Shown piece after piece: positions 1 to 20,947 of a DNA stretch of 62,772 bases. Location: positions 1 to 62,772 of the forward strand of contig NIVC01003522.1 in NCBI GenBank assembly GCA_002269645.1, in the 5' to 3' direction. Made by a program: the position numbers and the translations under genes. Each line of letters starts with the position of its first letter. Positions within the stretch are counted from its first letter, which is position 1. The notes beneath the pieces were generated by a model. It did no database searches. It had not been told where the DNA came from and saw nothing but the letters and a program-made list of their open reading frames with translations. This DNA comes from Macrostomum lignano (Eukaryota).

Positions 1-3000
1 GTCGGGGGGGGAGCTGCTGTCAAGACTATAACACACGGGCTTTGTCTCCACCAACCCCTGCTCAGTCGGGGGGGGGGAGCTGCTGTCAAGACTATAACAC
101 ACGGGCTTTGTCTCCACCAACCCCTGCTCAGTCGGGGGGGGGGAGCTGCTGTCAAGACTATAACACACGGGCTTTGTCTCCACCAGCCCCTGCTCAGTCG
201 GGGGAGCTGCTGTCAAGACTATAACAACACGGGCTTTGTCTCCACCAACACGCCCCTGCTCAGTCGGAGGGGGAGGCTGCTGTCAAGACTATAACACACG
301 GGCTTTGTCTCACCAACCCCTGCTCAGTCGGGGGGGGGGGAGATGCTGTCAAGACTATAACACACGGGCTTTGTCTCCACCAACCCTGCTCAGTCGGAGG
401 GGGAGCTGCTGTCAAGACTATAACACACGGGCTTTGTCTCCACCAACAACCCTGCTCAGTCGAGGGGGAGATGCTGTCAAGACTATAACACACGGGGCTT
501 TGTCTCCACCAACCCCTGCTCAGTCGAGGGGGAGCTGCTGTCAAGACTATAACACACGGGCTTTGTCTCCACAACGCCCTGCTCAGTCGGGGGGAGCTGC
601 TGTCAAGACTATAACACACGGCTTTGTCTCCAACAACCCCTGCTCAGTCGGGGGGGGAGCTGCTGTCAAGACTATAACACACGGGCTTTTGTCTCCACCA
701 ACGCCCTGCTCAGTCGGGGGGGAGCTGCTGTCAAGACTATAACACACGGGCTTTGTCTCCACCAACCCCTGCTCAGTCGGAGGGGGAGCTGCTGTCAAGA
801 CTATAACACACGGGCTTTGTCCTCCACCAACCCCTGCTCAGTCGGGGGGGGGAGCTGCTGTCAAGACTATAACACACGGGCTTTGTCTCCACCAACCCCT
901 GCTCAGTCGGGGGGGAGCTGCTGTCAAGACTATAACACACGGGCTTTGTCTCCACCAACCCCTGCTCAGTCGGAGGGGAGCTGCTGTCAAGACTATAACA
1001 CACGGGCTTTGTCTCCACCAACCCCTGCTCAGTCGGGGGGGGGAGCTGCTGTCAAGACTATAACACACGGGCTTTGTCTCCACCAACCCTGCTCAGTCGG
1101 AGGGGGAGATGCTGTCAAGACTATAACACACGGGCTTTGTCTCCACCAACCCCTGCTCAGTCGGAGGGGGAGCTGCTGTCAAGACTATAAACACGGGCTT
1201 TGTCTCCACCAACCCCTGCTCAGTCGGGGGGGAGCTGCTGTCAAGACTATAACACACGGGCTTTGTCTCCACCAACAGCCCTGCTCAGTCGGGGGGGAGA
1301 TGCTGTCAAGACTATAACACACGGCTTTGTCTCCACCAACCCCTGCTCAGTCGGGGGGGAGCTGCTGTCAAGACTATAACACACGGGCTTTGTCTCCACC
1401 AACCCTGCTCAGTCGGGGGGAGATGCTGTCAAGACTATAACACACGGGCTTTGTCTCCACCAACCCCTGCTCAGTCGGAGGGGGAGCTGCTGTCAAGACT
1501 ATAACACACGGCTTTGTCTCCACCAACCCCTGCTCAGTCGGGGGGGGAGCTGCTGTCAAGACTATAACACACGGGCTTTGTCTCCACCAACCCCTGCTCA
1601 GTCGGAGGGGGAGATGCTGTCAAGACTATAACACACGGGCTTTGTCTCCACCAACCCTGCTCAGTCGGGGGGAGCTGCTGTCAAGACTATAACACACGGG
1701 CTTTGTCTCCACCAACCCCTGCTCAGTCGGGGGGGAGATGCTGTCAAGACTATAACACACGGGCTTTGTCTCCACCAACCCTGCTCAGTCGGGGGGGAGC
1801 TGCTGTCAAGACTATAACACACGGGCTTTGTCTCCACCAACCCCTGCTCAGTCGGAGGGGGAGCTGCTGTCAAGACTATAACACACGGCTTTGTCTCCAC
1901 CAACCCCTGCTCAGTCGGGGGGAGCTGCTGTCAAGACTATAACACACGGGCTTTGTCTCCACCAACCCTGCTCAGTCGGGGGGGAGCTGCTGTCAAGACT
2001 ATAACACACGGGCTTTGTCTCCACACACCCTGCTCAGTCGGAGGGGGAGCTGCTGTCAAGACTATAACACACGGGCTTTGTCTCCCACAACCCCTGCTCA
2101 GTCGGGGGGGAGCTGCTGTCAAGACTATAACACACGGCTTTGTCTCCACCAACCCCTGCTCAGTCGGAGGGGGAGCTGCTGTCAAGACTATAACACACGG
2201 GCTTTGTCTCCACCAACCCTGCTCAGTCGAGGGGGAGCTGCTGTCAAGACTATAACACACGGGCTTTGTCTCCACCAACCCCTGCTCAGTCGGGGGGGAG
2301 CTGCTGTCAAGACTATAACACACGGGCTTTGTCTCCACCAACCCTGCTCAGTCGGGGGGGAGCTGCTGTCAAGACTATAACACACGGGCTTTGTCTCCAC
2401 CAACCCCTGCTCAGTCGGAGGGGGAGCTGCTGTCAAGACTATAACACACGGGCTTTGTCTCCACCAACCCCTGCTCAGTCGGGGGGGAGCTGCTGTCAAG
2501 ACTATAACACACGGGCTTTGTCTCCACCAACCCCTGCTCAGTCGAGGGGGAGCTGCTGTCAAGACTATAACACACGGGCTTTGTCTCCACCAACCCCTGC
2601 TCAGTCGGAGGGGGAGCTGCTGTCAAGACTATAACACACGGGCTTTGTCTCCACCAACCCCTGCTCAGTCGGGGGGAGCTGCTGTCAAGACTATAACACA
2701 CGGGCTTTGTCTCCACCAACCCCTGCTCAGTCGGGGGGGAGCTGCTGTCAAGACTATAACACACGGGCTTTGTCTCCACCAACCCCTGCTCAGTCGGGGG
2801 GGAGCTGCTGTCAAGACTATAACACACGGGCTTTGTCTCCACCAACCCCTGCTCAGTCGGGGGGGAGCTGCTGTCAAGACTATAACACACGGGCTTTGTC
2901 TCCACCAACCCCTGCTCAGTCGGAGGGGAGCTGCTGTCAAGACTATAACACACGGGCTTTGTCTCCACCAACCCTGCTCAGTCGAGCTGCTGTCAAGACT

Positions 3001-3033
3001 CACACGGGCTTTGTCTCGTGCTCAGTCGGGGGG
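1..3033. repeat. ~64-bp tandem satellite, left part (runs off window start), ~47 units
   Basis: Unit GTCGG(A/G)GGGGAGCTGCTGTCAAGACTATAACACACGGGCTTTGTCTCCACCAACCCCTGCTCA with a variable poly-G tract; the last two units before 3033 carry deletions. Confidence 0.98.
3025..3033. other. Target-site duplication (left copy; right copy 8870-8878)
   Basis: GTCGGGGGG flanks both ends of the element and is part of the satellite unit; exact length is ambiguous because of the G run. Confidence 0.8.
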
Positions 3034-3052
3034 ACTTGACTTACTTGACTTA
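3034..3052 (-). repeat. LINE 3' terminal short tandem tail (TAAGTCAAG)2T
   Basis: Plus strand reads ACTTGACTTACTTGACTTA directly after the TSD. Confidence 0.85.
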
Positions 3053-3145
3053 GCTGCAGGGCGGTCCGAAGACGCAGCGGGGAGGCGAGCGTCGCCCATT
3101 CCGCTAATCCCTGAAAGACCCGCATAGGCTAGGGCGCGGGGCCGG

Positions 3146-6100
3146 TCAGGGAGGTCTGCCGGTCCTGTCTGCAGCGTTGTCTTCGGTGGGGAAGACGGAG
3201 GCTCGCTTGGTGGCCCGGAGGAACCGGATGAGCCGTGGGATGTTCTCGGGCCGGCAAACGTCGTCCAGGGACGGGTTGGGCCCGAGGTGGTTGAGCCGGT
3301 CTCGGTTGAAGGCCGGGCAGTAGCAGACGAAGTGCATGGCATCTTCATTCTCGAGGCTGCAGAAGGGGCAGAGTTCACTCCGGCGAACACATCGGAGGAA
3401 GCAGTGCCTGGCAAAGCAACCGTGACCTGTGAAGGTCATAGTGAGAGCGCGGATATCTTTTCGATTTTGATTCAAAAGGATTCTCCGCAGCTTGAGGGAC
3501 GGATTGGGCACTGCCGCACGAGATTGGCGGCAGTTGGAGATACCATCCCATCTGCGCAAGTGCAGGATGTCCGCCCAGTCGTTAATCTGACGATTAATGA
3601 CTGTGGCGGGGATGGGGGCCAGGGGCACGGGGCCAAGGGGCGAGCCGGAACAGCCCGCCTTAGCGAGGGAGTCGGCGAGCTCGTTACCTTTGAAGCCGGC
3701 GTGTCCTGGGATCCACGTGAGCCGGACGGTGTTCCTCCGAGCCAGCTTGTTGAGCTGCCCGATACAGTCGCGGACTGTTCGGGAGTTCGTAGTGGTGTGA
3801 CACAGGGCCTGTAAAGCGGCCTGGCTGTCAGAGTGGAAGAAGATTCTTCTGTCCTTGAAGTCCTTGCGGTGGAGCTCAGCTGCACAGGAGCTGATGGCAA
3901 GGACTTCATTCTGGAAGACGCTGGAGAGTCTGCCAGTGTGTTGGGCGTGAGTAGCAATCACGCGGCCGTTGATAAGGATGCAGACTCCAAAGCCGGATAA
4001 ACCGTCTTTGGAGGATCCGTCAGTGAAGCAGTGAACCTCCTGAGGGGCCCAGCTGTCGTTGGCGTTCTCCCTGGAGGGGATCGTGACCTTGAAGCGTTGG
4101 TAGAGGTTGAGGGAGCGCGGTTCAGCGTCCGAAAGGACAGCCGCACTCCCACTCTCCTCCAGAACTTTAAGGCACAGGTCAGAGTGCGGCAGGAGCTTGC
4201 GCTTCGCCATCGCTCTTTGTGGCTTGAAGCTAACACCAGCCTCGATGAGCCGGCGGGTGGTTTTAGCAGCCTCGCGACGGACAAAGATGTCCAGAGGCGG
4301 GAGGCAGAGAAAGGCGTTGAGGCCGTCAAAGGGAGCAGAGAGCGGGGCATTCAGGATCATGCGGCACGCACGTCCCTGCACCTTTTTGAGGGCTTCGTGG
4401 CAGGTTTTAATCTGCAAGGCGCTGGTCCAGACCAGGCCGGCGTATGTAACGGCCGGTCGGACCATTGCGGTATAGATCCACCAGAGACGCTTTGGGGTGA
4501 GGCCCCAGGTGGTGCCGACGGCTCTGCGCAGCTGCGCAAGAATCGCGAGGGCTTTTTTGGTTTTGGCCTGGACGTGGGTGGACCAGCTCAGCCGGTGGTC
4601 CAGCGTAACGCCGAGACACTTGGTTTGCTTGCAGGATGGAATTTCCACCCCGTAAAGCTTTAGTGGGCGAATACGCCAGTTTACCCTGCTGGTGAACATG
4701 ATCGCGACAGTTTTGGTCTCGGAGAGCCTGAGGCCGCACCTGTCCGCCCAACGTTCAGCAGAGCGAATGAAGTTTTGCAAAAGATCTCTAAGGGTTTCAG
4801 GTGACGGTCCGGATGCCACGGCTGTGACATCATCGGCGTAACCGACCTTGAGGATGGGGTCAAGATGGCTGTCCTGGAGGAGCTCATCGATGACCATGTT
4901 CCAGAGAACTGGAGAGAGGACACCGCCCTGGGGGCTGCCTTTGCAGACGGTTACCGTCCGTTGGTGGCCCAACAGGTGTGCGGTGGCAGTACGGTGGCTG
5001 ATCATATACATGATCCACCGGGTGAGGTGCGAGTGGGTTCCTCTAGCACGTAGAGCTCTGTCAAAGGCCTCAAAGAGGACATTATCGAAGGCTCCAACAA
5101 TGTCGAGGAAGACAGCGAGAGCGTAGCCATTACCAAGAACGGCTTTCTCCAGCATGTCAACCAGAACGTGAAGCGCGCTCTCCGTGGACCTGCCTGCCCG
5201 AAAGGCATGCTGGTTCTCACTGAGCGGCTTGTTCTTCAGTTCCACAGAGAGGAGGCGCCAGAGCACCAGTCTCTCTAACAGCTTCACCAATGAGGAGGTG
5301 AGGCTAATTGGTCTGAAGGATTTAATGGACCGGTAGTCCGGTCGGCCAGGCTTGGGGATAAAGACCACCTTGGCCTCGGTCCAGGATTTCGGAACAAAGC
5401 CGAGCACAATGCAGGCTTTCAGAAGCCGGCAAAGGTTCCGCAGGAAACCGGTGCATTTCACCGCCTCCCGCAGGAAGGCTGGCACAACGCCGTCCGGTCC
5501 TGGGGATTTGAAGGGTTTGAAGGAGGAGACAGCTTTAGTAACGCGGTCCTCCGTGATGATTGAGTCAGCCAGTACGTGTCCGCCCACTGAGTGGTCAGGG
5601 GGCCGGGCCTAGCTGGCTCGTTCGGGAAAAACGCTGTTAGCATCGCTTCCAGTGTTTCTCCTGGGTTCTCAGTGAGCGAGCCGTCGGCTCTCTTGACTGA
5701 GGAGAGTTTGGACATTTTGTCCAGGGTGAGGGCTTTAACGATTCTGGAGGTGGGGCGGGAGCCCTCAAGTTCCTCACAGTATTCGCGCCACTTGTTGGTT
5801 TTGGCGTTCCTAACCTGCCTCTTGAACTCGTGGATAGAGTTCAGGTAGGCGGTTTGGTCGGCCGGGTTTTTAGTTTTTTGGGCCCTGCGGTGAAGCCTTT
5901 TGGCTCTGCGACGGAGGTCGCCAAGCTGCGGGTTCCACCATGGGGCCGACTGTTTGCCTTTATATGCCTTTAGTGGGCATGAGGCTTCGAAGGCAGCAGT
6001 GAGCGAGTCCGTAAGTGCGGCCGCAAATTCATCTGCTTCTTCGCAGGTGTTGATGGAGACTGGAGCGCTAGTGCAACGATAGGTCTCCTCCAGGGCAAGC

Positions 6101-6849
6101 CTGAAGGCGGTCCAGTCGGTATTCCTAGCATTCCGTTTCCAGTAAAGCTGGCCTGCGTTACGGGCGCTGGCCAGCGTGAAAGAGATGAACTTGTGATCGG
6201 AGAGGGACGCCTCAGGAAGCACCCGCCATTCCCTAGTGCTCTGGAAGAGCCTGGGCGTGGCGAGGGTGGCATCCAGCACCTCCGATCGGCGTCCGTTATT
6301 GAAGGTAGGGGTACTACCCGAGTTACAGAACTCAAGGGTTGTAGTAGCAATATAAGCCAGGAAGTCTTCACCTCTCTGGTTTATATCAGAACTGCCCCAG
6401 TGGGTGTGGTGGGCATTGATGTCACCTGCCACGAGCAGCTCATAGTTTCTGGTGGAGCAGAGCTCGACCAGTGTGACAAGCTCTACTGGGATCATCTCGC
6501 CGTCGCCCGGTAGGTAAACCGAGGCGATGAGGGTAGTCCTCCCAGGGAGTATGTCTTCAGACTGGATGACACAGATGTCCCTGGTGGACAGGTCTGATCT
6601 GAGCCATGCGTTAATAGAACTGGACACCATGATGCAGGATCTTGGTGCCAGGTTTCCCTCCCGGGTACCAGCGGTTAAACACTGGTAGCCGGTGGGGACA
6701 TGTTGGGGGCTGCCCCTAAGCGTCCAAGGTTCCTGGATAAGGATAATCCCTGGCACGTATTGGTCAGTGTGCTTCAAGAGGTTGACTGAAGCAGCAATGC
6801 TGTGCTGCAGGTTGACCTGCAAGCAGTGGATGCCCTGGGAGACAGTCAT
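3146..6849 (-). CDS. LINE ORF2 (AP endonuclease - reverse transcriptase - RNase H - CCHC-type finger), split by one frameshift near 5598-5602
   Basis: APE motifs LQVNL, IQEPW, GDINAH, SDHK in 5458-6849. RT motifs QHAFRAGRST, LDIVGAFD, GSPQGGVLSP, YADD; RNase H FTDGS, NEVLAI, SDSQAAL, WIPGHAGFKGNELAD; CPFC..H..C in 3146-5608. One extra C in the C5 run (plus G5 5598-5602) joins the frames as ...PARPGPPDHSVGGHVLAD... Confidence 0.93.
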
Positions 6850-7000
6850 GTCTACTGTCCAGGGGAGGAGAAAAGCAACTCATTCTCAGCCTCATCGGTG
6901 AGAGTTGAGTCGCCAATTTCCATTGGCTCAGGCTCAGCCGCCTCCCCAGCCGCCGCGGAGGCGGACACGGCGCCCACGGCAGGTGAGTCACCTAGCCGCG

Positions 7001-8380
7001 CTACACCGCCCTCCTCCCCAGCGACTGGGGTACGGCTGCTGCCTTCGCCTTGCGCCCGCCGTCGGGAGTCTGAGCTCGGCCGGCAGCGTCCTCCTGGTGG
7101 TAATCCCACCAGTTGGAAGGCTGAGCCGTGCCGTCGTCCAGTTCCCTCGGCTGGCTTTCAGTGTTTTTTCGAGCGGCACGAGTCTGCTCGAGGTGAAGTC
7201 TCAGAGACTGAGCTTCGTCAAGTGCGCGCTGGATTAGACCGGACCGCCGGCTACTGCGGGCGGGTCTACGTCCGCGCGAGGCGGACTCAGCAGCGCGAAT
7301 AGCCTTGTTAGGCTCGGGATCGGGTTGCTGCTGCCGCTTGGCCGGCGGGGCATGAGCCCCAGCTCCGGGAGCGGCGCGCTTCCCGTCTTTCTTGGTCTCC
7401 ACCTTGCCCTCCTCACAGCGGAGGATGGTCAGTTGATGGAGACCAAGGTGGAGGTTTGTGCCGTGCGGTAGCCGCTTGGCCCATCCCTCCGTCAGGCCGA
7501 GGATGACTGTGGCCCCGGTCGTGCCCTTGCGGACCGTGCTGTGGTACACAAGACCACTGGCGTCGAGATCCGGGTGCCGCTTGAGCAGGAGCTGCCGCAG
7601 CTGCTCCCCGGACTTGATTGCACTGTCGGCCGGGACCCAAATCCGATGGCGGATGGTCTTCGGCCGCTCGCTCTCCAAGGCGAAGGTCAGCTGGCCCAGG
7701 TCGCTGTGCCAGTCGAACTTGGGCAGCTGATCCCGCAGGAGCTGGGTGCTCTCCTCGGATTTGCACCACAGTAGGATGCACCCGTTCGCCTTGGTGGACT
7801 TGACGATGTCCACGAAGACGCCCTCCAGGGTTAGATTGAGCAAGCCCTCGTCGATGGTACGCCACGCGACGTCGAGCTGCTCGGGCGTCAGGTCGAAATC
7901 CCCGCCGAGGATCATCACGGCGGGTTGCAGCGGCTGCTTGACCTTGGACGCGTAGGACTCGGAGGTCTTGAGCGGGGCCGCTTTGTCTTTGGAAGGCGGT
8001 AGGCCGGCAGGGTTGCCCCCCTGAGAGCCCGAGGACACGGCGGTTCCTGACGGCCCAGCCGCGCCACCGGACTCCCCAGAGGGCCTCCCCGCTGCGGTGG
8101 CTCCCGAAGGCCTCACCGCGGCTTGCGTGCCCTCCTCAGACGCAGCAGCAGCCCGCTTCTCCTGCCGCTTACGGTTGCGGCGGATGTTCCGCTGTCGTCG
8201 AGACTCGGCCGTGCGCGGTCGGCTAGACTGGCGGCCAGGGTGATCGGCGGCAGCGTCAGCTGGCCCGGTTGGACCAGGTTGGGCGTTGGTGCTACCAGTG
8301 GTAGCTACCGGAGCGGCTGATCCCGGTGAGCCAGAGGCGACCGGGTCAGTTTCTTTAGGGATGGTGGCGTTAGTGGCCAT
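7001..8380 (-). CDS. LINE ORF1 protein (probable DUF4780-like domain, no zinc knuckle seen)
   Basis: ATG at 8380 (MATNATIPK), low-complexity N-terminus, SYASKVK motif, then a globular region. An acidic tail in another frame (6852-7109, ending TAG-ac-ATG at the ORF2 start) may be the true C-terminus. Confidence 0.8.
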   Translation of the reverse strand: MATNATIPKETDPVASGSPGSAAPVATTGSTNAQPGPTGPADAAADHPGRQSSRPRTAESRRQRNIRRNRKRQEKRAAAASEEGTQAAVRPSGATAAGRPSGESGGAAGPSGTAVSSGSQGGNPAGLPPSKDKAAPLKTSESYASKVKQPLQPAVMILGGDFDLTPEQLDVAWRTIDEGLLNLTLEGVFVDIVKSTKANGCILLWCKSEESTQLLRDQLPKFDWHSDLGQLTFALESERPKTIRHRIWVPADSAIKSGEQLRQLLLKRHPDLDASGLVYHSTVRKGTTGATVILGLTEGWAKRLPHGTNLHLGLHQLTILRCEEGKVETKKDGKRAAPGAGAHAPPAKRQQQPDPEPNKAIRAAESASRGRRPARSSRRSGLIQRALDEAQSLRLHLEQTRAARKNTESQPRELDDGTAQPSNWWDYHQEDAAGRAQTPDGGRKAKAAAVPQSLGRRAV

Positions 8381-8584
8381 AGCTGAAAAGCGGGGAGGGC
8401 TACTCGTTATGCGAGTTGAGTACCCGACTGGCCGACACCTCAAGCCAGCCGGTTTGAAAAAAGGACCGCTAGCGACCGGACTACTCCCCGGCCTTCCAGC
8501 CCATCGGCACGGTCAAACACCTTAGGCATTAGAGGGTACGTTAAGCAGTACCACGGCCTGCAGGCTGGTGAGCCAGACCCGCAT

Positions 8585-8869
8585 ACCCAAATTCGGCCGA
8601 AGCCACTGGATAGGGTCGCCAGCGCCGGAGCCCAGTCTGTCCAGCAGCCCTAGGGTCTGCCTTGAACACACGCGGGGACGAGTACCCCTGGGTCGACTTG
8701 CGAGACAGCGTGGGGGAGTCTGCGGCTGCCAGAGGCAAATAGAGGGTGCAGACCTCCCACCAGCCTTGACCTGCTGAAGATGGGGGCAGGCGTGAAGCAT
8801 CGCAGACCTTAGCTCGTAGGCCTAGTCTGTCTCATACTTCACTGGCATGCTGAATACGCCTTCGCGTGC
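8585..8869 (-). ncRNA. HDV-like self-cleaving ribozyme at the LINE 5' end
   Basis: Minus-strand RNA: P1 GCACGCG (8869-8863) / CGCGUGU (8674-8668) with G1-U wobble; P2 ACCCAG (8693-8688) / UUGGGU (8590-8585); P3 GGG (8687-8685) / CCC (8677-8675); L3 UACUCGU; P1.1 AC/GU (8667-8666); J4/2 CGAAU with candidate catalytic C at 8595. G1 is the first base after the TSD. Confidence 0.88.
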
Positions 8870-11800
8870 GTCGGGGGGGGGGAGCTGCTGTCAAGACTAT
8901 AACACACGGGCTTTGTCTCCACCAACCCCTGCTCAGTCGGGGGGGGGAGCTGCTGTCAAGACTATAACACACGGGCTTTGTCTCCACCAACCCCTGCTCA
9001 GTCGGGGGGGGGGAGCTGCTGTCAAGACTATAACACACGGGCTTTGTCTCCACCAACCCCTGCTCAGTCGGGGGGGGGGAGCTGCTGTCAAGACTATAAC
9101 ACACGGGCTTTGTCTCCACCAACCCCTGCTCAGTCGGAGGGGGAGCTGCTGTCAAGACTATAACACACGGGCTTTGTCTCCACCAACCCCTGCTCAGTCG
9201 GGGGGGGGGGGGAGATGCTGTCAAGACTATAACACACGGGCTTTGTCTCCACCAACCCCTGCTCAGTCGGAGGGTGAGCTGCTGTCAAGACTATAACACA
9301 CGGGCTTTGTCTCCACCAACCCCTGCTCAGTCGGAGGGGGAGCTGCTGTCAAGACTATAACACACGGGCTTTGTCTCCACCAACCCCTGCTCAGTCGGGG
9401 GGGGGGGGAGATGCTGTCAAGACTATAACACACGGGCTTTGTCTCCACCAACCCCTGCTCAGTCGGAGGGGGAGCTGCTGTCAAGACTATAACACACGGG
9501 CTTTGTCTCCACCAACCCCTGCTCAGTCGGAGGGGGAGATGCTGTCAAGACTATAACACACGGGCTTTGTCTCCACCAACCCCTGCTCAGTCGGAGGGGG
9601 AGCTGCTGTCAAGACTATAACACACGGGCTTTGTCTCCACCAACCCCTGCTCAGTCGGGGGGGGGAGCTGCTGTCAAGACTATAACACACGGGCTTTGTC
9701 TCCACCAACCCCTGCTCAGTCGGGGGGGGAGCTGCTGTCAAGACTATAACACACGGGCTTTGTCTCCACCAACCCCTGCTCAGTCGGGGGGGGGAGCTGC
9801 TGTCAAGACTATAACACACGGGCTTTGTCTCCACCAACCCCTGCTCAGTCGGAGGGGGAGCTGCTGTCAAGACTATAACACACGGGCTTTGTCTCCACCA
9901 ACCCCTGCTCAGTCGGGGGGGGAGCTGCTGTCAAGACTATAGCACACGGGCTTTGTCTCCACCAACCCCTGCTCAGTCGAAGGGGGAGATGCTGTCAAGA
10001 CTATAACACACGGGCTTTGTCTCCACCAACCCCTGCTCAGTCGGAGGGGAGCTGCTGTCAAGACTATAACACACGGGCTTTGTCTCCACCAACCCCTGCT
10101 CAGTCGGGGGGGAGCTGCTGTCAAGACTATAACACACGGGCTTTGTCTCCACCAACCCCTGCTCAGTCGGAGGGGGAGATGCTGTCAAGACTATAACACA
10201 CGGGCTTTGTCTCCACCAACCCCTGCTCAGTCGGAGGGGGAGCTGCTGTCAAGACTATAACACACGGGCTTTGTCTCCACCAACCCCTGCTCAGTCGGGG
10301 GGGGAGCTGCTGTCAAGACTATAACACACGGGCTTTGTCTCCACCAACCCCTGCTCAGTCGGGGGGGGGGGAGATGCTGTCAAGACTATAACGCACGGGC
10401 TTTGTCTCCACCAACCCCTGCTCAGTCGGGGGGGGGAGCTGCTGTCAAGACTATAACACACGGGCTTTGTCTCCACCAACCCCTGCTCAGTCGGAGGGGG
10501 AGATGCTGTCAAGACTATAACACACGGGCTTTGTCTCCACCAACCCCTGCTCAGTCGGAGGGGAGCTGCTGTCAAGACTATAACACACGGGCTTTGTCTC
10601 CACCAACCCCTGCTCAGTCGGGGGGGGGGAGCTGCTGTCAAGACTATAACACACGGGCTTTGTCTCCACCAACCCCTGCTCAGTCGGAGGGGGAGATGCT
10701 GTCAAGACTATAACACACGGGCTTTGTCTCCACCAACCCCTGCTCAGTCGGAGGGGGAGCTGCTGTCAAGACTATAACACACGGGCTTTGTCTCCACCAA
10801 CCCCTGCTCAGTCGGGGGGGGGGAGATGCTGTCAAGACTATAACACACGGGCTTTGTCTCCACCAACCCCTGCTCAGTCGGGGGGGAGCTGCTGTCAAGA
10901 CTATAACACACGGGCTTTGTCTCCACCAACCCCTGCTCAGTCGGAGGGGGAGATGCTGTCAAGACTATAACACACGGGCTTTGTCTCCACCAACCCCTGC
11001 TCAGTCGGAGGGGGAGCTGCTGTCAAGACTATAACACACGGGCTTTGTCTCCACCAACCCCTGCTCAGTCGGGGGGGAGGTGCTGTCAAGACTATAACAC
11101 ACGGGCTTTGTCTCCACCAACCCCTGCTCAGTCGGAGGGGGAGCTGCTGTCAAGACTATAACACACGGGCTTTGTCTCCACCAACCCCTGCTCAGTCGGG
11201 GGGGAGCTGCTGTCAAGACTATAACACACGGGCTTTGTCTCCACCAACCCCTGCTCAGTCGGGGGGGAGCTGCTGTCAAGACTATAACACACGGGCTTTG
11301 TCTCCACCAACCCCTGCTCAGTCGGGGGGAGCTGCTGTCAAGACTATAACACACGGGCTTTGTCTCCACCAACCCCTGCTCAGTCAGCTGCTGTCAAGAC
11401 TATAACACACGGGCTTTGTCTCCACCAACCCGGCTTGCTGTCAAGACTATAACACACGGGCTTTGTCTCCACCAACCCCTGCTCAGTCGGGTCAAGACTA
11501 TAACCACGGGCTTTGTCTACCAACCAGTCGGGCTGCTGTCTCCACCAACCCCTGTCAGTCCACCAAGCTGCTGTCAAGACACTGTCTTTGTCTTTGTCTC
11601 CCTGCTCAGTCGGAGCTGCTGTCAAGACTATAACACACTGGGCTTTGTCTCCACCAACCCCTGCTCAGTCGGAGGGGGAGATGCTGTCAAGACTATAACA
11701 CACGGGCTTTGTCTCCACCAACCCCTGCTCAGTCGGAGGGGAGCTGCTGTCAAGACTATAACACACGGGCTTTGTCTCCACCAACCCCTGCTCAGTCGGA

Positions 11801-12024
11801 GGGGGAGATGCTGTCAAGACTATAACACACGGGCTTTGTCTCCACCAACCCCTGCTCAGTCGGGGGGGGAGCTGCTGTCAAGACTATAACACACGGGCTT
11901 TGTCTCCACCAACCCCTGCTCAGTCGGGGGGGGAGCTGCTGTCAAGACTATAACACACGGGCTTTGTCTCCACCAACCCCTGCTCAGTCGGGGGGGGGAG
12001 CTGCTGTCAAGACTATAACACACG
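8870..12024. repeat. ~64-bp satellite, right part, ~49 units
   Basis: Same unit as 1-3033; resumes exactly at GTCGGG; scrambled sub-units at ~11380-11640. Confidence 0.98.
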
Positions 12025-12094
12025 AACTCCGAAATCTACATGTACTTGCAGTTGTCTGATCCCTCCAAGTCAGATTCCTAGCTGATCCCAATTC

Positions 12095-12520
12095 TAATCC
12101 CTCAGTGCCACTATCTGTGCTAATCCCTCAGTGCCACTATCTGTGCTAATCCCTCAGTGCCACTATCTGTGCTAATCCCTCAGTGCCACTATCTGCTAAT
12201 CCCTCAGTGCCACTGTCTGTGCTAATCCCTCAGTGCCACTATCTGCTAATCCTTCAGCGCCACTATCTGTGCTAATCCCTCAGCGCCACTATCTGTGCTA
12301 ATCCCTCAGTGCCACTATCTGTGCTAATCCCTCAGAGCCACTGCCTGTGCTAATTCCTCAGTGCCACTATCTGTGCTAATCCCTCAGTGCCACTATCTGT
12401 GCTAATCCCTCAGCGCCACTATCTGTGCTAATCCCTCAGTGCCACTATCTGTGCTAATCCCTCAGTGCCACTATCTGTGCTAATCCCTCAGTGCCACTAT
12501 CTGTGCTAATCTCTCAGCGC
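12095..12520. repeat. 26-bp minisatellite, ~16 units
   Basis: TAATCCCTCAGTGCCACTATCTGTGC. Confidence 0.95.
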
Positions 12521-12934
12521 CTTAATCCCCCACAGCGCTGCAATATACCTGACCATTAAAGGCTGTCAACGGTCATTACAGCTCAAATTTTCACAAAATC
12601 AACGCAATGAATTGTATTAGCTCCGGTTAGGAAGAGAAGATGCCAAAGTCCTGTACGAATAGCATGCGGAAGGCGAGACGAGTGTTTGTGTTTAAATTAC
12701 GCATATGAACTGAAATTCTGTCGCCAACTCAAGCTCAGTGGCGGGTGGTTTGGATAAAAAAGTAGATGGGAATGCTTAGCAAGCTCAAGCACACAAAAAC
12801 GCATTGCCTGCATTGAAGCTGACTGATGAAAATATTTCGCACAAAAATGCTATATACGTCTGCTTCTATCGAGTCTTTCTTGCTGGCCCAGTTGAGGCAC
12901 TGAAAAACAAAGTGCTGCTGCCGGCTGGAGGCCG

Positions 12935-14662
12935 CTAGTCCCCGCCGGCAAACAGCGGCTCGGCGCCGAGCTTGCGCTGCTTCACGCGGGTGCTGCGCTC
13001 CAGGTTGTTCTTCTTCTCGATTTCCAGCGCCAGGTCGCCGGCCTGCTCCCACTTGCAGGACTCGTCCATGAAGCTGCATTTCTCCGAACCCCACTCTGGG
13101 TACACGTGCTCCACCGAGATGGCCATAGGCAGGTTCCTGGGCTCCAAGATGCCCTGCAGCAGCCGCGGGTTGGATTGCTTCCACTGTGTGGTCTCGATGG
13201 GCCTGGCCGGGTTCTTGCCGAACGGCGACTGCATGCGCAAGTCGCCCACCTTGGAGCAGGTTGGGCCGGTGCGCTGGTAGTTGAAGTACAGGTCCGAGTT
13301 GTCCGGGTAGGACTCCTTCACGAATAGGGCCACTTGGGCTGCTTCCGGGTACGGCTTGCGTATCTTGTAGGGTGGGAACATTTTCACCATGAGACGGTCG
13401 CACTGGTCAATGGCCACCAGGTGCGGGCCCCGCAGCGTCACCACAAGGTACTTCACCCAGCGGTACATGCCGATGCGCCGGTTCAGGATCCGTCTCGTCA
13501 CCTCGATCTCGCAGCCGGTCCTCTTGGCGATGGACCGAAACTGCCCTGGGTCCACGAGGAAGGCCTCGACCACCTGGTCAGTGAGCAGCACAATGTACTC
13601 CTTGCGGGATACGTCAGCAAACACGTTCATGCAGCCGATCACAATGCCCTCCTTGTCCAGATGGCCCATGTTCAGCTTCTTCTTGTCCGTTTTATCCGCT
13701 TTTTTTTCCTCCCCCGGTGCGGGCAGGTCCTCAGCTGGCTCCCCGTCTTCCGCATCGCCTTCGCCATCTCCTTCGCCGCCTTCGTCGCCACCTTCACCGC
13801 CGGCAGCGTCTTCACCAGCTGAGGTGCTCGGCGTCTCCTGTTGGTCGGCCTCATCATCTTCTGTGGAGCTGCCGCCGCCGCCGCCGCCGCCGCCGCCATC
13901 GTCAGCGATGTCCTCGTTATCGGTGGAGCTCACACCGGCTCCGCTGCCTTCGGCGCCCTCCTTGCTGGTGCTGGTGGTGCCACCGTCGTCACTGGATTCG
14001 CGTCTGCATCGGTGATGGCGGAAGGAGTCAGGTGATATAGTTCGAAATGGCAGTGTATACTCTAAACCTGGAGCTTAGGCTTAGCCTAGAATAGCAAACT
14101 ATGATTGGGTGTGCGGCGCTTATCATCAGCTGGGCACTCACGCATTGGACACATTGGACTCGCTGTCCATGATAATATTGATGTCCACCATGCCGTCCTT
14201 GTTTTTCTCTGCAGCCTTGAACTGCGTGATGATGGTGGTTTGCTTGCCCTCTGCGCTGTGCCGCTGAATGTCCCGCAGTCCGCCCGCCTTGGACTGGCCG
14301 AACGGGTTCTTGTTGTTGGTGTTGGAGTCGGAGCGTCGTCGCTCTAGCTCAGCTGCTTGCTGCCGCTCCTGCCGGCTCAGCAGCTCGTGGAGGCAGCCGG
14401 CGGCTTTGGTTGTCACGGCAACCGCGTCCATAGTCCCGGAAGAGATGCTTTGTGGATTATCCGGGCGCGGCTGCTTGCTGGACTCGGCCGTCTCGTTGGT
14501 CCAGGGATTCCAGTGGCGGAGGCTGCGTCTGGCGGCCCATCCCTTCTGCTGGCCGGCAGTCAGCTTCATCCACTCGAGAGAGCGGCCGAACACACGGCGG
14601 TCAACGGAGGTCGGACTGAATTCGGAGCCGCTGCTGGACTCGCAGCTGCTCTCACTTTCCAT
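12935..14662 (-). CDS. Uncharacterised 2-exon gene (~529 aa), acidic/low-complexity N-half, possible degenerate KH-like domain
   Basis: Exon 1 14662-14142 (ATG; donor gc|GTGAGT), exon 2 14003-12935 (acceptor ccatcaccgatgcAG); phases match (521+1069 nt). Segment FRSIAKRTGCEIEVT...YLVVTLRGPHLVAIDQCDRL resembles a type I KH fold without GxxG. Confidence 0.68.
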
Positions 14663-15325
14663 GCCTAGTTGGGTCTGCGCTTTGCTCGACTTGAAGGCAG
14701 AATGAAATAGGCGATGAGGCGGGAAGCTGAGCGGGGGGCGTAAACTTTTTGTGCTCGGCTTCTCACAGAGCAAGCTCAGCGGAGTTGTCTATGGCTTTCA
14801 TCTTGAGACAAACTTGCCTTCAATACTGCTCTGTGGGATTTCAAGTTAGGAGCATAAAGAGGTGAATATTTGGCTTTCTATTATATTTATGATTCTAGAT
14901 GCGTAATGCATGCTTCTCATAAAGTTTTTAAGTCCGGAAATGGAATTCTTCATAAGAGCTTGAGTGAACTTATGGAGGTGCATGATGTCAATAAGGCAGG
15001 AAATATTGGTCTTGACCTTGAGCTTCGATTTCAGATCTACAGTGCAATGGTTTAGGTTTCGTAAGCAATAAGGCAGGGGACATGGGTCACTGGGAGCCTA
15101 ATTGTGAGTGACTGACTTAACTTAGACTACTGATAAAAGTAGACGATTAAAGAGTTGAAAGTTAAAATCTCTCACATAGCCTAAAAATGTCTCCATAAAA
15201 GAAATGACAGCATAAAAGAAGCGACCAATCAGGAAGCGGCCGGCCAATCGGGCTGCCAGTGCAAGAGAAAAAGGCCAGCTCCATTAGAGGGAGAGCGAGA
15301 GGTTGACTTCGGCTGCAGGCTGGAG

Positions 15326-17809
15326 ATGGGCGAAGCCAACTGCTCCGTGCTGACCAGCTCTGGCGATGAGCAGTACCGACAGTTCTTCGAGCGAGCCCAA
15401 TTCGCCACGGCGCTCATCGCGTACCCCCTGATCTGCAGCTTCGGCATCGTGGCCAATGCAGTCAGCGTCATCGTCATCTCCAGCTGCAAGCTGGCCGCGC
15501 CCACCAACGTTTTCTTGGTGAGCCTGGCGCTCAGCGACACGGTCAAGCTGGCCAACGACTTTTTGTACTTCGTGAGCGTTCTGGTGCAGCACGCGGCTCC
15601 GAACTCGGATGCCGCCGCAGCGATGTTCGCCAGCCTCTATCCCTACAGCCACTTCGTTATGCAGACGTCAAACTGCGTCACCGTTTGGCTGGCGGTCGCC
15701 ATCTCTGTTGAGCGGTGAGGCTTGGTACTCAGTTAGTGCGCTGTCAGTGCAATGTTGATAACACCTGTCTGACACCTATGGCAATAAGCCTATTATTAGA
15801 CAATTAGGCTGCAACAGAGGGCGCAGCTTGTAAAAATATACGGCAGCCTCGCAGGTTCTCTTCGAAGCATGGTAACAGAGCAGGGTCAGTCTGGTAACAG
15901 AGCAGGGTCAGTCTGGTAACAGAGCAGGGTCAGTTTGGTAACAGCAGAGTCAGTCTGGTAACAGAGCAGGGTCAGTCTGGAAACAGAGCAGGGTCAGTCT
16001 GGAAACAGAGCAGGGTCAGTCTGGAAACAGAGCAGGGTCAGCCTGGTAACAGAGCAGGGTCAGCCTGGTAACAAAGTAGGGTCAGTCTCAGCCCAGCTGA
16101 GCCCCCAAGCAGTCTCGGCCTACCCGGGGTTGCAGCTGCAAGCCACTTGGACTGCTGCAGCCAACCCATTTATCAATCGGCGGAGCCTTCACAAAAATGC
16201 TCTTGAAGCTCTATTCTCATTTTAGGGGTGCGCTTGCACTTCTCATTCGGCTTGAAATCGCAAGGCCGTCGGAGTGCTGCTCCGGTGGATGGGAAATTGC
16301 GGGACGTGGCTTTAATTAGCGGGTTGCAGTGCAGCTGCCACCGCGCTCTGTCTGTGACGCAATACAGCAGAGCACAGCATCCCCTGCCTCCTCAGCATCT
16401 ATCAGCACCTGTTAGGGAGAACTCTGATTAATGGGACTAATGGGAGCGGGGGAAAGCAAAGGCCTACAGGAACTTCGGGCTGGGATCGGGTGAGCTGAGA
16501 TCTTACCTGTAAAATTAGTACGGCTCGGCTGTCAAAGAAAGCACTAAAACTGCCGTTTCAGTTTCGTTCTGGTGGCGGCTCCGAGCCGAGCCAAGCAGCT
16601 GTGCACTCTGCGGGCTTCAAAGCTGATTGTGCTCGCCACCTGCTCGCTGCTGACGCTGCTCTGCCTGCCGCACCTGCTGCGCTATGAGTCGGTCGGCTGT
16701 GCCGAGCCGCAGACCAACGGCACGGTGCAGCACCGGGTGGTGGAGACGGGCAGCTGGCAGTCCAGCCCATACCGGAGGCTGTACACCTGGCTGATCTACG
16801 CCGCGCGGTTCCTGGTGCCGCTGACAATGCTGATTGGCCTGAATGCCTTCATCGTGCGCGCCCTGCGGCGGACGCGCAGCCGGCGCCGGCTGATGGGGCG
16901 GCACCGGATCACCGTGATGCTGCTCACCGTCGTGCTGGTGTTCATCATCAGCATCATGCCGGACGCCGTGCTCAGCACGGTGCTGAACTACGGCTTCGTG
17001 GAGGAGAGCTATTTGGTGCGGGGCGTGCGGGAGATCACGGACGTGTTCGTGTGCTTCCACTCGGCCTGCAACTTTGTCCTCTACTTCACATTCAACAGCA
17101 TCTTCAAGAATCAGTTCCTGCAGCTGTTCTGCTGGTAAGTGCCTGGCAGAACATGGCATGGTTGTTGCTTTTCAGCTTTGAAAAAAGTTGCATAGGCGTC
17201 GAATCCAGTCACTCGATGCCGGAACCTAGAATCGGGTCTTTTTCACAAAAGCCTCTCTGTAGGCCTGCAATGCGCTGCAGGAACACTCGCAGACAGCTGG
17301 CACTCGTAAGCTGATGGAGCGTGGGAAACCTCCGAGCCGAAGATTGTGGGTGAATTATGCTAATTTGCTGCCTTGGTTTCTCAATACCTTGAGGTGTTGT
17401 TTGAAAATGATGGACCTCTCAGTTGACTTTTTCTCTTTTGTTCACACGTAAGCTTGCAACAGACATCGCTGCAAGGTTCTGAGGGGAAGGTAAATCAGAA
17501 ATACGAGTAAAGTCGTGTTTATCAAAATCAGCTCTTCTCTCCTTTCATTTACATTCTTGCAGGCGGTGCAGCCAGAAGCCCCGGCTGCGGATTCACGCCG
17601 GGTCCGCCGAGGGCTCCGGCTCCGTGCCGAGGCTCTACGTGAGCCTGCAGGCGCCCCGGCGCAAGCCCCAGGTGCACAGGGAGGCGGCCAGCGGTGGGCT
17701 GGAGATTCCGTTGAGGTCGGTTCTGGAGACCCCGGCATCGATGCTGGAAATTGTGCGAATGAAGACGCAGCGACGGGCAGGAGGTGCGTCAGGAGACACG
17801 GCGGTCTGA
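15326..17809 (+). CDS. Class A (rhodopsin-like) peptide GPCR, FMRFamide/myosuppressin-receptor-like, 3 exons, ~402 aa
   Basis: Exons 15326-15714, 16562-17134, 17563-17809 with in-phase GT-AG. TM1 GIVAN, TM2 FLVSLALSD, TM3 SVERF (split by intron), TM5 FLVPLTMLIGLN, TM6 FIISIMPD, TM7 HSACNFVLY. Confidence 0.92.
15872..16087. repeat. 22-bp minisatellite in GPCR intron 1
   Basis: GGTAACAGAGCAGGGTCAGTCT, ~10 units. Confidence 0.92.
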
Positions 17810-17893: not shown

Positions 17894-18156
17894 GTGTTAG
17901 GGCTGCCTCAACTGCAGTGTTAGGGCTGCCTCAACTGCAGTGTTAGGGCTGCCTCAACTGCAGTGTTAGGGCTGCCTCAACTGCAGTGTTAGGGCTGCCT
18001 CAACTGCAGTGTTAGGGCTGCCTCAACTGCAGTGTTAGGGCTGCCTCAACTGCAGTGTTAGGGCTGCCTCAACTGCAGTGTTAGGGCTGCCTCAACTGCA
18101 GTGTTAGGGCTGCCTCAACTGCAGTGTTAGGGCTGCCTCAACTGCAGTGTTAGGGC
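17894..18156. repeat. 23-bp minisatellite
   Basis: GTGTTAGGGCTGCCTCAACTGCA, ~11 near-identical units. Confidence 0.95.
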
Positions 18157-19177
18157 CGCACGTCTGCGGGCAGCTTTGATTACAGAGACCGTTTTTCTTG
18201 TAAATTCCGTTCTGAACACGGATGACTTTTTCGTCTAAAAACTGTTTCATGCGACCTATTTATGACCCATCCCACATACCGCTAACTGTGTTCCCACTAG
18301 CCTCACATTTCGTTGTCATTTTGATAACCTGCTCGCGTTCCGAACCAGAGGTGTCAGCCCTTGACAGACAGGCGGACAGCTATGGCTATAAATAGACCCA
18401 AAGCCGGAAGCCAAGACCTGTCAGGACACAGATATTCGATTAACTCACACTTTTTGATCGCTTGTTTATCGCTTACCGCTATGTTTACCGCCTGTTTATC
18501 GCTTTGTTTATCTCTTTTTCTTAGAAATTGATGCAAAAATGCAGAGCAGTCGGATTCTACAAGTCAGGAATCAAAATAATCCAAAGCGAGTTTTAAAAAT
18601 GCTACCCTGGCAAACAAGCGGAGCACTGACGAAATTCCTGCAGTCGTTCTTGACACTTTTGGCATATTTTTTCTCAGCCCGAGTTTGACTATGGTAAAAA
18701 TACTTAACGCTATGAACGAGGGGTGTTTCAGAAGTAACGAGAATTTCGTCTTGGACTTTGTTCATTTAAGCTGGAGAATGCTGGTTAAAGTTGCAAACTG
18801 TTGACTAACCGCCGAGAACCTCACTCAAAAGTGCTTTCAAGTGAGACTGAGACTATGCAAGGACCGAAAAGTCCTGCAGACGAAGGCGCTGATTTTTTAC
18901 AAAACCCGTTTGTTCATTTTTTCCATCGACAAAAATCCGATTTTTTAATCCCGAGCTTGGACTTTCCTGCAAGATTATCTAAATTAGTTCGTGAATCAGC
19001 CTCAGGCGCAACGCATGCTGTTCCCAAGTTCTAAGGGGGAGAAGTTGGAAATTTAGTGCGAAAAGCTGAAGTGTTCTGTCCCCACTGATGAATTTCGTTG
19101 AGTAAAATTGCAAGCGGCGTCTTTCTTATTTTATTGTCATTGCAATCGTCACGCAAGGCAAAGTGCTGCCATTAGTG

Positions 19178-20947
19178 TGCCTCTGGCTGAATGAGTTTCA
19201 GTGCCTCTGGCTGAATGAGTGTCAGTGACTGGCTGAATGAGTGTCAGTGACTCTGGCTGAATGAGTGTCAGTGCCTCTGGCTGAATGAGTGTCAGTGACT
19301 CTCGCTGGCTGAATGAGTGTCAGTGCCTCTGGCTGAATGAGTGTCAGTGCCTCTGGCTGGCTGAATGAGTGTCAGTGACTCTGGCTGAATGAGTGTCAGT
19401 GACTCTCGCTGGCTGAATGAGTGTCAGTGCCTCTGGCTGAATGAGTGTCAGTGCCTCTGGCTGAATGAGTGTCAGTGACTCTCGCTGGCTGAATGAGTGT
19501 CAGCTGTGCCTCTGGCTGAATGAGTGTCAGTGCCTCTGGCTGAATGAGTGTCAGTGACTCTCGCTGGCTGAATGAGTGTCAGTGCCTCTGGCTGAATGAG
19601 TGTCAGTGCCTCTGGCTGGCTGAATGAGTGTCAGTGACTCTCGCTGGCTGAATGAGTGTCAGCTGTGCCTCTGGCTGAATGAGTGTCAGTGCCTCTGGCT
19701 GGCTGAATGAGTGTCAGTGACTCTGGCTGAATGAGTGTCAGTGACTGGCTGAATGAGTGTCAGTGACTCTCGCTGGCTGAATGAGTGTCAGCTGTGCCTC
19801 TGGCTGAATGAGTGTCAGTGCCTCTGGCTGAATGAGTGTCAGTGACTCTCGCTGGCTGAATGAGTGTCAGCTGTGCCTCTGGCTGAATGAGTGTCAGTGC
19901 CTCTGGCTGAATGAGTGTCAGTGACTCTCGCTGGCTGAATGAGTGTCAGCTGTGCCTCTGGCTGAATGAGTGTCAGTGCCTCTGGCTGAATGAGTGTCAG
20001 TGACTCTCGCTGGCTGAATGAGTGTCAGCTGTGCCTCTGGCTGAATGAGTGTCAGTGCCTCTGGCTGAATGAGTGTCAGTGACTCTCGCTGGCTGAATGA
20101 GTGTCAGCTGTGCCTCTGGCTGAATGAGTGTCAGTGCCTCTGGCTGAATGAGTGTCAGTGACTCTCGCTGGCTGAATGAGTGTCAGCTGTGCCTCTGGCT
20201 GAATGAGTGTCAGTGCCTCTGGCTGAATGAGTGTCAGTGACTCTGGCTGAATGAGTGTCAGTGCCTCTGGCTGAATGAGTGTCAGTGACTCTCGCTGGCT
20301 GAATGAGTGTCAGCTGTGCCTCTGGCTGAATGAGTGTCAGCTGTGCCTCTGGCTGAATGAGTGTCAGTGACTCTCGCTGGCTGAATGAGTGTCAGCTGTG
20401 CCTCTGGCTGAATGAGTGTCAGTGCCTCTGGCTGGCTGAATGAGTGTCAGTGACTCTGGCTGAATGAGTGTCAGTGACTGGCTGAATGAGTGTCAGTGAC
20501 TCTCGCTGGCTGAATGAGTGTCAGCTGTGCCTCTGGCTGAATGAGTGTCAGTGACTCTCGCTGGCTGAATGAGTGTCAGCTGTGCCTCTGGCTGAATGAG
20601 TGTCAGTGCCTCTGGCTGAATGAGTGTCAGTGACTCTGGCTGAATGAGTGTCAGTGCCTCTGGCTGAATGAGTGTCAGTGACTCTCGCTGGCTGAATGAG
20701 TGTCAGCTGTGCCTCTGGCTGAATGAGTGTCAGTGCCTCTGGCTGGCTGAATGAGTGTCAGTGACTCTGGCTGAATGAGTGTCAGTGACTGGCTGAATGA
20801 GTGTCAGTGACTCTCGCTGGCTGAATGAGTGTCAGTGACTCTCGCTGGCTGAATGAGTGTCAGCTGTGCCTCTGGCTGAATGAGTGTCAGTGCCTCTGGC
20901 TGAATGAGTGTCAGTGACTCTCGCTGGCTGAATGAGTGTCAGTGACT
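19178..20947. repeat. 20-28-bp minisatellite with a 79-bp trimeric higher-order pattern
   Basis: Core GGCTGAATGAGTGTCA; 28+27+24-bp variants recur in order (starts at 19921, 20000, 20079). Confidence 0.95.

Follow-up and report, generated by a model that had tools for sequence, protein, structure and literature searches.

How does a retrotransposon embedded in satellite DNA come to begin at one exact base? The question is raised by a 62,772-nt stretch of the Macrostomum lignano assembly GCA_002269645.1 (contig NIVC01003522.1, positions 1 to 62,772 of the forward strand; hereafter the window). A 5,836-bp copy of a retrotransposon that lacks long terminal repeats (non-LTR) occupies positions 3034-8869 on the minus strand, as delimited from satellite arrays, open reading frames (ORFs), Pfam domains and junctions. 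An original prediction, made from the letters of the window, had placed a complete self-cleaving ribozyme of the hepatitis delta virus (HDV) type at its 5' end. Comparison with related elements points to an HDV-like, 5'-processing ribozyme in the first 239 nt of the element RNA (8869-8631, minus strand), a reading to which a probability of roughly 0.77 was assigned, with the 3' half of the ribozyme drawn differently. The pairings are present, they are conserved and covary in relatives, and nt 1 of helix P1 is the insertion junction. Coordinates are those of the window, and features of the element and its RNA are on the minus strand unless another strand is given.

Insertion junction and comparison set

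The element interrupts a satellite with a unit of 63-64 bp (arrays 5-2984 and 8875-12024). A 9-bp target-site duplication, CCCCCCGAC, stands directly before G8869 (8870-8878) and again directly after the element tail (3025-3033). When the flanks were joined without the element, the satellite unit was restored and read ...CCCGAC directly followed by TGAGCA. The two flanking CCCCCCGAC copies and the restored satellite reading therefore identify G8869, the first non-satellite base, as base 1 of the insertion. It had been proposed earlier that this G adjoins the satellite duplication and that the predicted scissile bond equals the insertion junction. Both statements held: the duplication is found on both sides, the joined flanks form continuous satellite, and G8869 is the first element base.

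Three sequences were compared: the window and two related elements, L001 and L002. L001 is a JGI metagenome contig whose ORF1 has 55% identity to that of the window; it begins within the segment between P1 and P2 (J1/2) and does not include the P1 5' strand. The second relative, L002, is a Logan contig from run ERR14788467, with 64% identity to the window in ORF2 and about 33-36% in ORF1. The 5' untranslated regions (UTRs) of both align with that of the window (489 nt), and nucleotide identity to the window over the ribozyme stretch is 73% for L001 and 54% for L002. The L002 contig starts exactly at the base homologous to G8869, and at its 3' end it extends ~520 nt beyond the element (5966-6492) into unrelated sequence with an antisense ORF. 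An exact start at element base 1 combined with a 3' extension is the pattern expected for a 5'-processed read-through transcript.

Map of the predicted ribozyme

The proposed ribozyme (8631-8869, 239 nt, predicted cut 5' of G8869) was delimited by a helix map, a descriptor match and pair counts. In P1, the extreme 5' end GCACGCG (8869-8863, G8869 being nt 1) pairs at 7 of 7 positions with CGCGUGU (8674-8668), ~190 nt downstream. The opening pair is the wobble G8869-U8668, and its position coincides with the insertion junction. J1/2 (8862-8693) is a 170-nt insert that forms a structured, multi-hairpin domain, as judged from minimum-energy folds, a conserved block and covarying stems. P2 pairs CCCAG (8692-8688) with CUGGG (8635-8631), the 3' edge of the ribozyme. 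P3 pairs GGG (8687-8685) with CCC (8677-8675) and is invariant in the window, L001 and L002.

The loop L3, UACUCGU (8684-8678), has the form UNNYCGU common to all three sequences; its first U and its G are kept in each, as in the L3 of HDV. A G/U reverse wobble has been described for HDV L3 (PMC3774820). P1.1 is built from bases 2 and 3 of L3 (A8683 and C8682) and the two bases directly after P1', GU (8667-8666), as the pairs G8667-C8682 and U8666-A8683. J1.1/4 is UCAA (8665-8662), resembling the GCAA that the genomic HDV ribozyme has at this place. P4 (8661-8643) is the hairpin GGCAGACC-CUAG-GGCUGCU, of 7 bp with one bulged A, and was recovered in unconstrained folds. J4/2 (8642-8636) is GGA-C-AGA, in which C8639, 3 nt before P2', is the predicted catalytic base. 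All HDV strands are thus present in the order P1-(J1/2)-P2-P3-L3-P3'-P1'-P1.1-P4-J4/2-P2' in the window and in L002, and in L001 except for the P1 5' strand.

Every string quoted in the original prediction is present on the minus strand (GCACGCG, 8869-8863; ACCCAG, 8693-8688; GGG/UACUCGU/CCC, 8687-8675; CGCGUGU, 8674-8668; GU, 8667-8666; CGAAU-UUGGGU, 8595-8585). Its complete HDV fold was placed correctly in P1, the P2 5' strand, P3, L3 and P1.1, and misplaced in P4, J4/2 and P2'. The J1/2 length of 169 nt that it gave is recovered when P2 is taken as ACCCAG/UUGGGU, and the J1/2 stem that it named, GUGGGAGGUCUGC/GCAGACUCCCCCAC, exists and belongs to the minimum-energy fold.

Covariation in related elements

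P1 is GCACGCG/CGCGUGU in the window (7 bp, G1-U) and GCCUGC/GCAGGC in L002 (6 bp, G1-C), both bases being altered in two of the pairs; L001 retains the 3' strand CGCGAGC only. P2 is CCCAG/CUGGG in the window, CUCAGA/UCUGAG in L002 and CCCAAA/UUUGGG in L001, and P3 is GGG/CCC in all three. L3 reads UCUCCGU in L002 and UUCUCGU in L001. An A-U swap in P1.1 had been put forward earlier as a compensatory change, and the comparison bears this out: P1.1 is C-G and A-U in the window, and U-A and C-G in L002, where AG pairs with U and C of the local L3 and both pairs are changed on both sides relative to the window. In L001 it is C-G plus a U-U mismatch.

J1.1/4 is GCAA(U) in L002 and UAAA in L001. The P4 of L001, GGCAGACC-ACU-GGUCUGCC, has 8 bp; that of L002, GCGCCCGGCC-AUCU-GGCCGGGCGU, is a 10-bp hairpin of unrelated sequence at the same place. 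J4/2 is AG-C-UGC in L002 and GAA-C-GUG in L001, and a C stands exactly 3 nt before P2' in 3 of 3 sequences. In minimum-energy folds, the J1/2 inserts of the window and L002 share one set of hairpins, and J1/2 contains a strongly conserved hairpin block, GUAUGAGA...GCUAAGGUCU.CGAUGC, and covarying stems.

Pairs were counted in a trimmed alignment of the three sequences (18 pairs over P1, P2, P3 and P1.1). Paired cells made up 95.6% of the total, and 6 of the 18 pairs were changed on both sides. When the 3' partners were slid by 1-3 columns, 24-54% of cells were paired and 0-1 pairs were double-changed; in a shuffling control, the observed values were reached in 3 of 500 shuffles. Over three sequences, this covariation supports the proposed pairings and is not proof of them.

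Chance matches and folding

An HDV descriptor asked for 6-7 bp and an initial G in P1, <=220 nt in J1/2, 5-6 bp in P2, 3 bp in P3 and 7-8 nt in L3; in addition, P1.1 had to have two pairs, P4 had to form a hairpin, and a C had to stand three bases ahead of P2'. Applied loosely to both strands of the window (125 kb), it matched ~7 loci, and a match somewhere therefore means little. Other loose matches lay at 12896-13075 (+), 14837-15025 (+), 49468-49298 (-), 37305-37120 (-) and 28470-28275 (-); these were assumed to be chance matches, and their number fits the shuffle rate. Anchored on element base 1, the descriptor was matched by 11 of 20,000 sequences obtained from the 5' UTR by dinucleotide shuffling (5.5e-4). 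The anchored descriptor also matched L002 at its nt 1.

Unconstrained folding of L002 returned P1, P3 and P4 together with a nine-pair helix closing J1/2 (z = -3.0 relative to shuffles), and that of the window included P2, P3 and P4. A fold of the window in which P1 and P3 were enforced was less favourable by 3 kcal/mol; the P2 duplex contributes -6.7 kcal/mol, a term that the pseudoknot-free folding program cannot add to a fold with P1 and P3. Just before P2, at about nt 165-171 (8705-8699), the P1 5' strand recurs as a near-copy, which can pair with the P1 3' strand over 6 bp in L001, 5 bp in L002 and 3 bp in the window. A compact ribozyme formed through this P1-like segment (nt ~165-170) was considered and rejected for the window: it would have only 3 bp there and would discard 165 nt conserved as element sequence.

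Weighing of the alternatives

Several observations weigh against a ribozyme at this place. The minimum-energy fold of the window was no better than those of shuffles (z = -0.69). Nucleotides 3-6 can also pair locally with nt 11-14 (window 8867-8856; ACGC/GCGU, with CUGC/GCAG as its L002 counterpart); since this pairing covaries as well, the covariation of P1 is partly shared with a competing hairpin. The J4/2 segments CGUG of L001 and CUGC of L002 depart from the CNRA pattern of published HDV descriptors, L002 has G1-C and not G1-U, and L001 has U-U in P1.1. The comparison covers three sequences only, of which L001 is without the P1 5' strand. The 5' end of L002 could mark a repeat boundary or a promoter start and not cleavage, and ORF2 of the window copy is frameshifted. 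Finally, no Rfam family was matched, those of the HDV type (HDV_ribozyme, CPEB3 and the drz families) included, even at E <= 10; the whole window was searched at the gathering threshold, positions 8300-9000 at E <= 10, and eight related loci at both thresholds. The Rfam result probably reflects the 170 nt inserted between P1 and P2, which would defeat compact models.

The local pairing within P1 and the pairing of the near-copy may represent competing folds, or chance. A ribozyme that acts as a two-state device, alternating between an active fold (P1 with the helix closing J1/2) and an inactive one, appears rather unlikely. Were it so, cleavage could be timed, or the 5' end could be freed after cleavage for translation or reverse transcription, and the near-copy in L001 could support a second, compact, internally cutting ribozyme.

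The 3' half as originally drawn consisted of a P4 of ~70 nt (8665-8596), the catalytic C8595 within a J4/2 of CGAAU, and a P2' of UUGGGU (8590-8585), giving a ribozyme of 285 nt. Six pairs are possible in the window between ACCCAG and UUGGGU, the CGAA of this J4/2 resembles the J4/2 of HDV, and the homologous place in L001, CAAA-UGGGU, would still allow 5 pairs. In L002, however, the homologous stretch is GGCUAAACCGGGUAC, in which a U aligns to the supposed catalytic C and nothing is complementary to the P2 strand CUCAGA. The 70 nt after P1.1 do not fold into a single helix closing next to P1.1 and J4/2, and for the GGGU(A) of the segment the predicted partner, in 3 of 3 sequences, is a conserved (A/G)CCC ~220 nt downstream. 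The compact alternative, by comparison, is kept and covaries in the window, L001 and L002. The larger 3' half was rejected on these comparative grounds, and it is very improbable that it describes the ribozyme. Because the compact map with C8639 is the conserved one, a C8595-to-U knock-out of the kind envisaged earlier would target the wrong base.

Two further explanations dispense with catalysis. A structured 5' UTR might serve another role (protein binding, translation or RNA stability), with an internal promoter that starts at G1. Many RNase H-bearing non-LTR elements use internal promoters, as has been stated in general terms (PMC3774820); the entire ~490-nt UTR is structured and conserved beyond the ribozyme part, Rfam returned no match, and a transcription start would account equally well for an L002 contig that begins at G1. 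Such a fold would nevertheless have to arrive by coincidence at the full HDV strand order anchored on nt 1 in two diverged families, at a 3-bp GC P3, at a 7-nt L3 with the conserved U and G, at a two-pair P1.1 directly after P1', and at a C placed precisely 3 nt ahead of P2'. Ribozyme and promoter can, moreover, occur together, as in L1Tc (PMC3383444). A structured UTR without catalysis is accordingly considered unlikely. Plain chance, in which a GC-rich 5' UTR happens to fit a permissive descriptor, could call on the ~6 other loose matches in the window, which presumably arose in this way, and on the unremarkable folding energy of the window. It is set against the frequency of anchored matches in shuffles (5.5e-4) and their recurrence at nt 1 of L002, against six pairs changed on both sides, and against the collapse of pairing when partners are slid; the resemblance is extremely unlikely to be accidental.

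The preferred reading, an HDV-like ribozyme at the element's 5' end, suggests the following course, in which catalysis and read-through transcription are deduced from sequence. Transcription would read through into the element, here out of the satellite around it, and produce a longer RNA that contains it. P1 would join the extreme 5' end to CGCGUGU, looping out the 170-nt J1/2 domain between P1 and P2, and P2, P3, L3, the two-pair P1.1 and the short P4 would complete a nested double pseudoknot. With C8639 of J4/2 as the putative general acid, the ribozyme would cut directly 5' of G8869 and yield an element RNA starting at base 1, which could then be copied by target-primed reverse transcription at a new target. 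An RNA that begins at base 1 would explain why full-length insertions start exactly at G1, beside the target duplication.

Structure of the downstream 5' UTR

The rest of the 5' UTR (8381-8630) is also conserved and structured, as judged by RNAalifold, and holds the CGAAU-UUGGGU string (8595-8585) and the hairpin GGCUUCGGCC. The RNAalifold consensus for this part (window, L001 153-521 and L002 238-598) has 66 pairs, in 16 of which both bases are changed. Among its features are an invariant hairpin block, CCGGGGAGUA(G/U)UCCGG, and a long-range pairing of the GGGUAC...GUACCC type. Relative to L001 and L002, the window is without two segments of ~65 and ~38 nt in this region. Speculatively, the downstream structure might serve translation of the uncapped product, or protein binding.

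Coding regions, 3' end and classification

ORF1 (7001-8380) was taken from the ORF list, is intact with 459 aa from its ATG and has 55% identity to protein P0001. The ORF1 of the window copy gave no match in a Pfam scan and has no CCHC motif; DUF4780 was matched by the ORF1 of relatives. ORF2 (3146-6849) encodes an apurinic/apyrimidinic endonuclease (APE), a reverse transcriptase (RT) and an RNase H (Pfam Exo_endo_phos_2, RVT_1 and RNase_H). It is broken by one frameshift near 5599-5629, where tblastn with the intact protein P0002 gave two overlapping high-scoring segment pairs in different frames. Compared with the intact 1,232-aa ORF2 of L002, the frame change falls between the endonuclease and reverse-transcriptase parts. 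The window copy is probably not autonomous, or else carries an assembly indel at 5599-5629.

The element ends in the tail (TAAGTCAAG)x2 + T (3034-3052), defined by junction analysis. L002 has the conserved 3' UTR blocks of the window too, and ends after them in one GCTAAGTCAAAG; the window tail is a tandem duplication of the final 9 nt (TAAGTCAAG), present as one copy in L002. The window (3034-3140) and L002 (5850-5965) have in common the conserved blocks UUAGCGGAAUGGGCG and CCUGCAGCUAAGUCAA, which are probably a recognition element for reverse transcription.

The element had been called LOA-like. An APE-RT-RNase H layout occurs in the clades I, LOA, Tad1, ingi and some R1, and the two-ORF layout with such an ORF2 fits several RNase H-bearing clades without singling out LOA; ORF1 of the LOA group is of a type with an RNA recognition motif and CCHC knuckles. 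The closest named relatives of ORF2 are unclassified Macrostomum lignano proteins, with 74% and 63% identity to parts of it.

Searches for further relatives

Searches with ORF1, by single sequence and by profile, found only the L001 and L002 contigs. A search of metagenome contigs for related loci yielded no further family members, and two conserved DNA patterns of the 5' UTR had no match in metagenome, genome or viral contigs. A further protein relative, P0003, has 60% identity, and six distant relatives (L003-L008) have 35-47% identity in ORF2. The 5' regions available differ in length: in L003 ORF1 is cut by the contig start, L005 and L007 have only ~70-110 nt upstream of ORF1, and L004, L006 and L008 have ~450-1,600 nt. 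The descriptor, even when relaxed, matched 0 of 5 of these distant 5' regions (L004-L008), which supplied no usable element 5' end.

Pfam DUF4780 was found in the ORF1 of L006 (1619-3400), L007 (73-3990; ORF1 of 1,305 aa) and L008 (493-2130), all with 35-38% ORF2 identity, and L001 ORF1 gave a weak DUF4780 match (E = 0.008). Literature on DUF4780 and Macrostomum repeats offered nothing usable for clade assignment, and a full-text literature search returned no paper linking HDV-like ribozymes to Macrostomum.

Satellite and tandem arrays

Within the array at 8875-12024 the 63-64-bp satellite shows a 257-bp higher-order period. Both arrays (5-2984 and 8875-12024) yield many long spurious ORFs on both strands in the mechanical ORF list. 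The first satellite units on the 3' side of the element (2960-3033) are degenerate, with internal deletions (e.g., GAGCA[...]CGAGACAAAG) and a missing C-run; those on the 5' side are regular. Four unrelated tandem arrays lie close together at 12094-12521 (period 26 bp), 15870-16088 (22 bp), 17894-18156 (23 bp, 100% identical copies) and 19177-20000+ (24/52 bp).

Significance and comparison with known systems

The locus very probably holds an HDV-like 5'-processing ribozyme in a family and host group in which none was found described. An RNase H-bearing, two-ORF family of a flatworm-type host would thereby join the elements whose 5' end is defined by an HDV-like ribozyme of their own, and the known mechanism would be unchanged. 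The map is corrected in two places: the predicted catalytic C is 8639 and not 8595, and the 3' edge is 8631 and not 8585. If large J1/2 inserts let HDV-like ribozymes escape the Rfam models, these ribozymes are probably under-counted.

The genomic HDV ribozyme has a 7-bp P1 with G1-U, a 3-bp GC P3 and the L3 UCCUCGC. The predicted ribozyme shares with it the order of helices, the 7-bp P1 opening with G1-U, the 3-bp GC P3, a similar L3 (UACUCGU), a J1.1/4 of the NCAA type, and a C separated from P2' by 3 nt. It differs in its P1.1 (A-U and C-G, as opposed to two C-G pairs), in a J1/2 of 170 nt where HDV has a few, in a short P4, and in the spacing from P4 to the catalytic C, which is three nt here and one in HDV.

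HDV-like ribozymes of Baggins and RTE elements were reportedly described by Ruminski et al. in 2011. Two further sources describe ribozymes of the HDV-like type at the 5' ends of Baggins (LOA clade) and RTE elements (PMC6765202, PMC3774820). The comparison here is with these descriptions and not with sequences; the hosts differ, being insects for Baggins and RTE as against a flatworm-type host here, and no Rfam drz model matched the window ribozyme. In large HDV-like members, a structured J1/2 (P1.2) activates the core and, by drawing P1 and P2 together, can speed the reaction (PMC4908430).

In R2, an HDV-like ribozyme has been shown experimentally to release the element RNA from its co-transcript (PMC3774820). 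As in R2, the double pseudoknot here belongs to a non-LTR element and lies in its first few hundred nt; in R2, too, P3, L3 and P1.1 are conserved and P1 shows covariation from species to species (PMC3774820). The silkmoth R2 J1/2 spans 216-498 nt, part of which is required for activity (PMC3774820), and the long J1/2 of the window element is therefore not unusual. R2 differs in having a single ORF, site-specific insertion, a restriction-like endonuclease and co-transcription with 28S ribosomal RNA, and in many lineages it cuts upstream, within 28S sequence. The window element, unlike R2, has an ORF1 and an APE-RT-RNase H ORF2, a target duplication, a satellite site and an A-U/C-G P1.1.

The HDV-like ribozyme of L1Tc from Trypanosoma cruzi (L1TcRz) is active in vitro (PMC3185411). 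Like the predicted ribozyme, it occupies the first nucleotides of an element of the APE-RT-RNase H type, with release from long co-transcripts, and it overlaps other functions of the 5' end (PMC3185411, PMC3383444). L1TcRz is compact, with 77 nt, and doubles as an internal promoter, whereas the predicted ribozyme has 239 nt, including the 170-nt insert.

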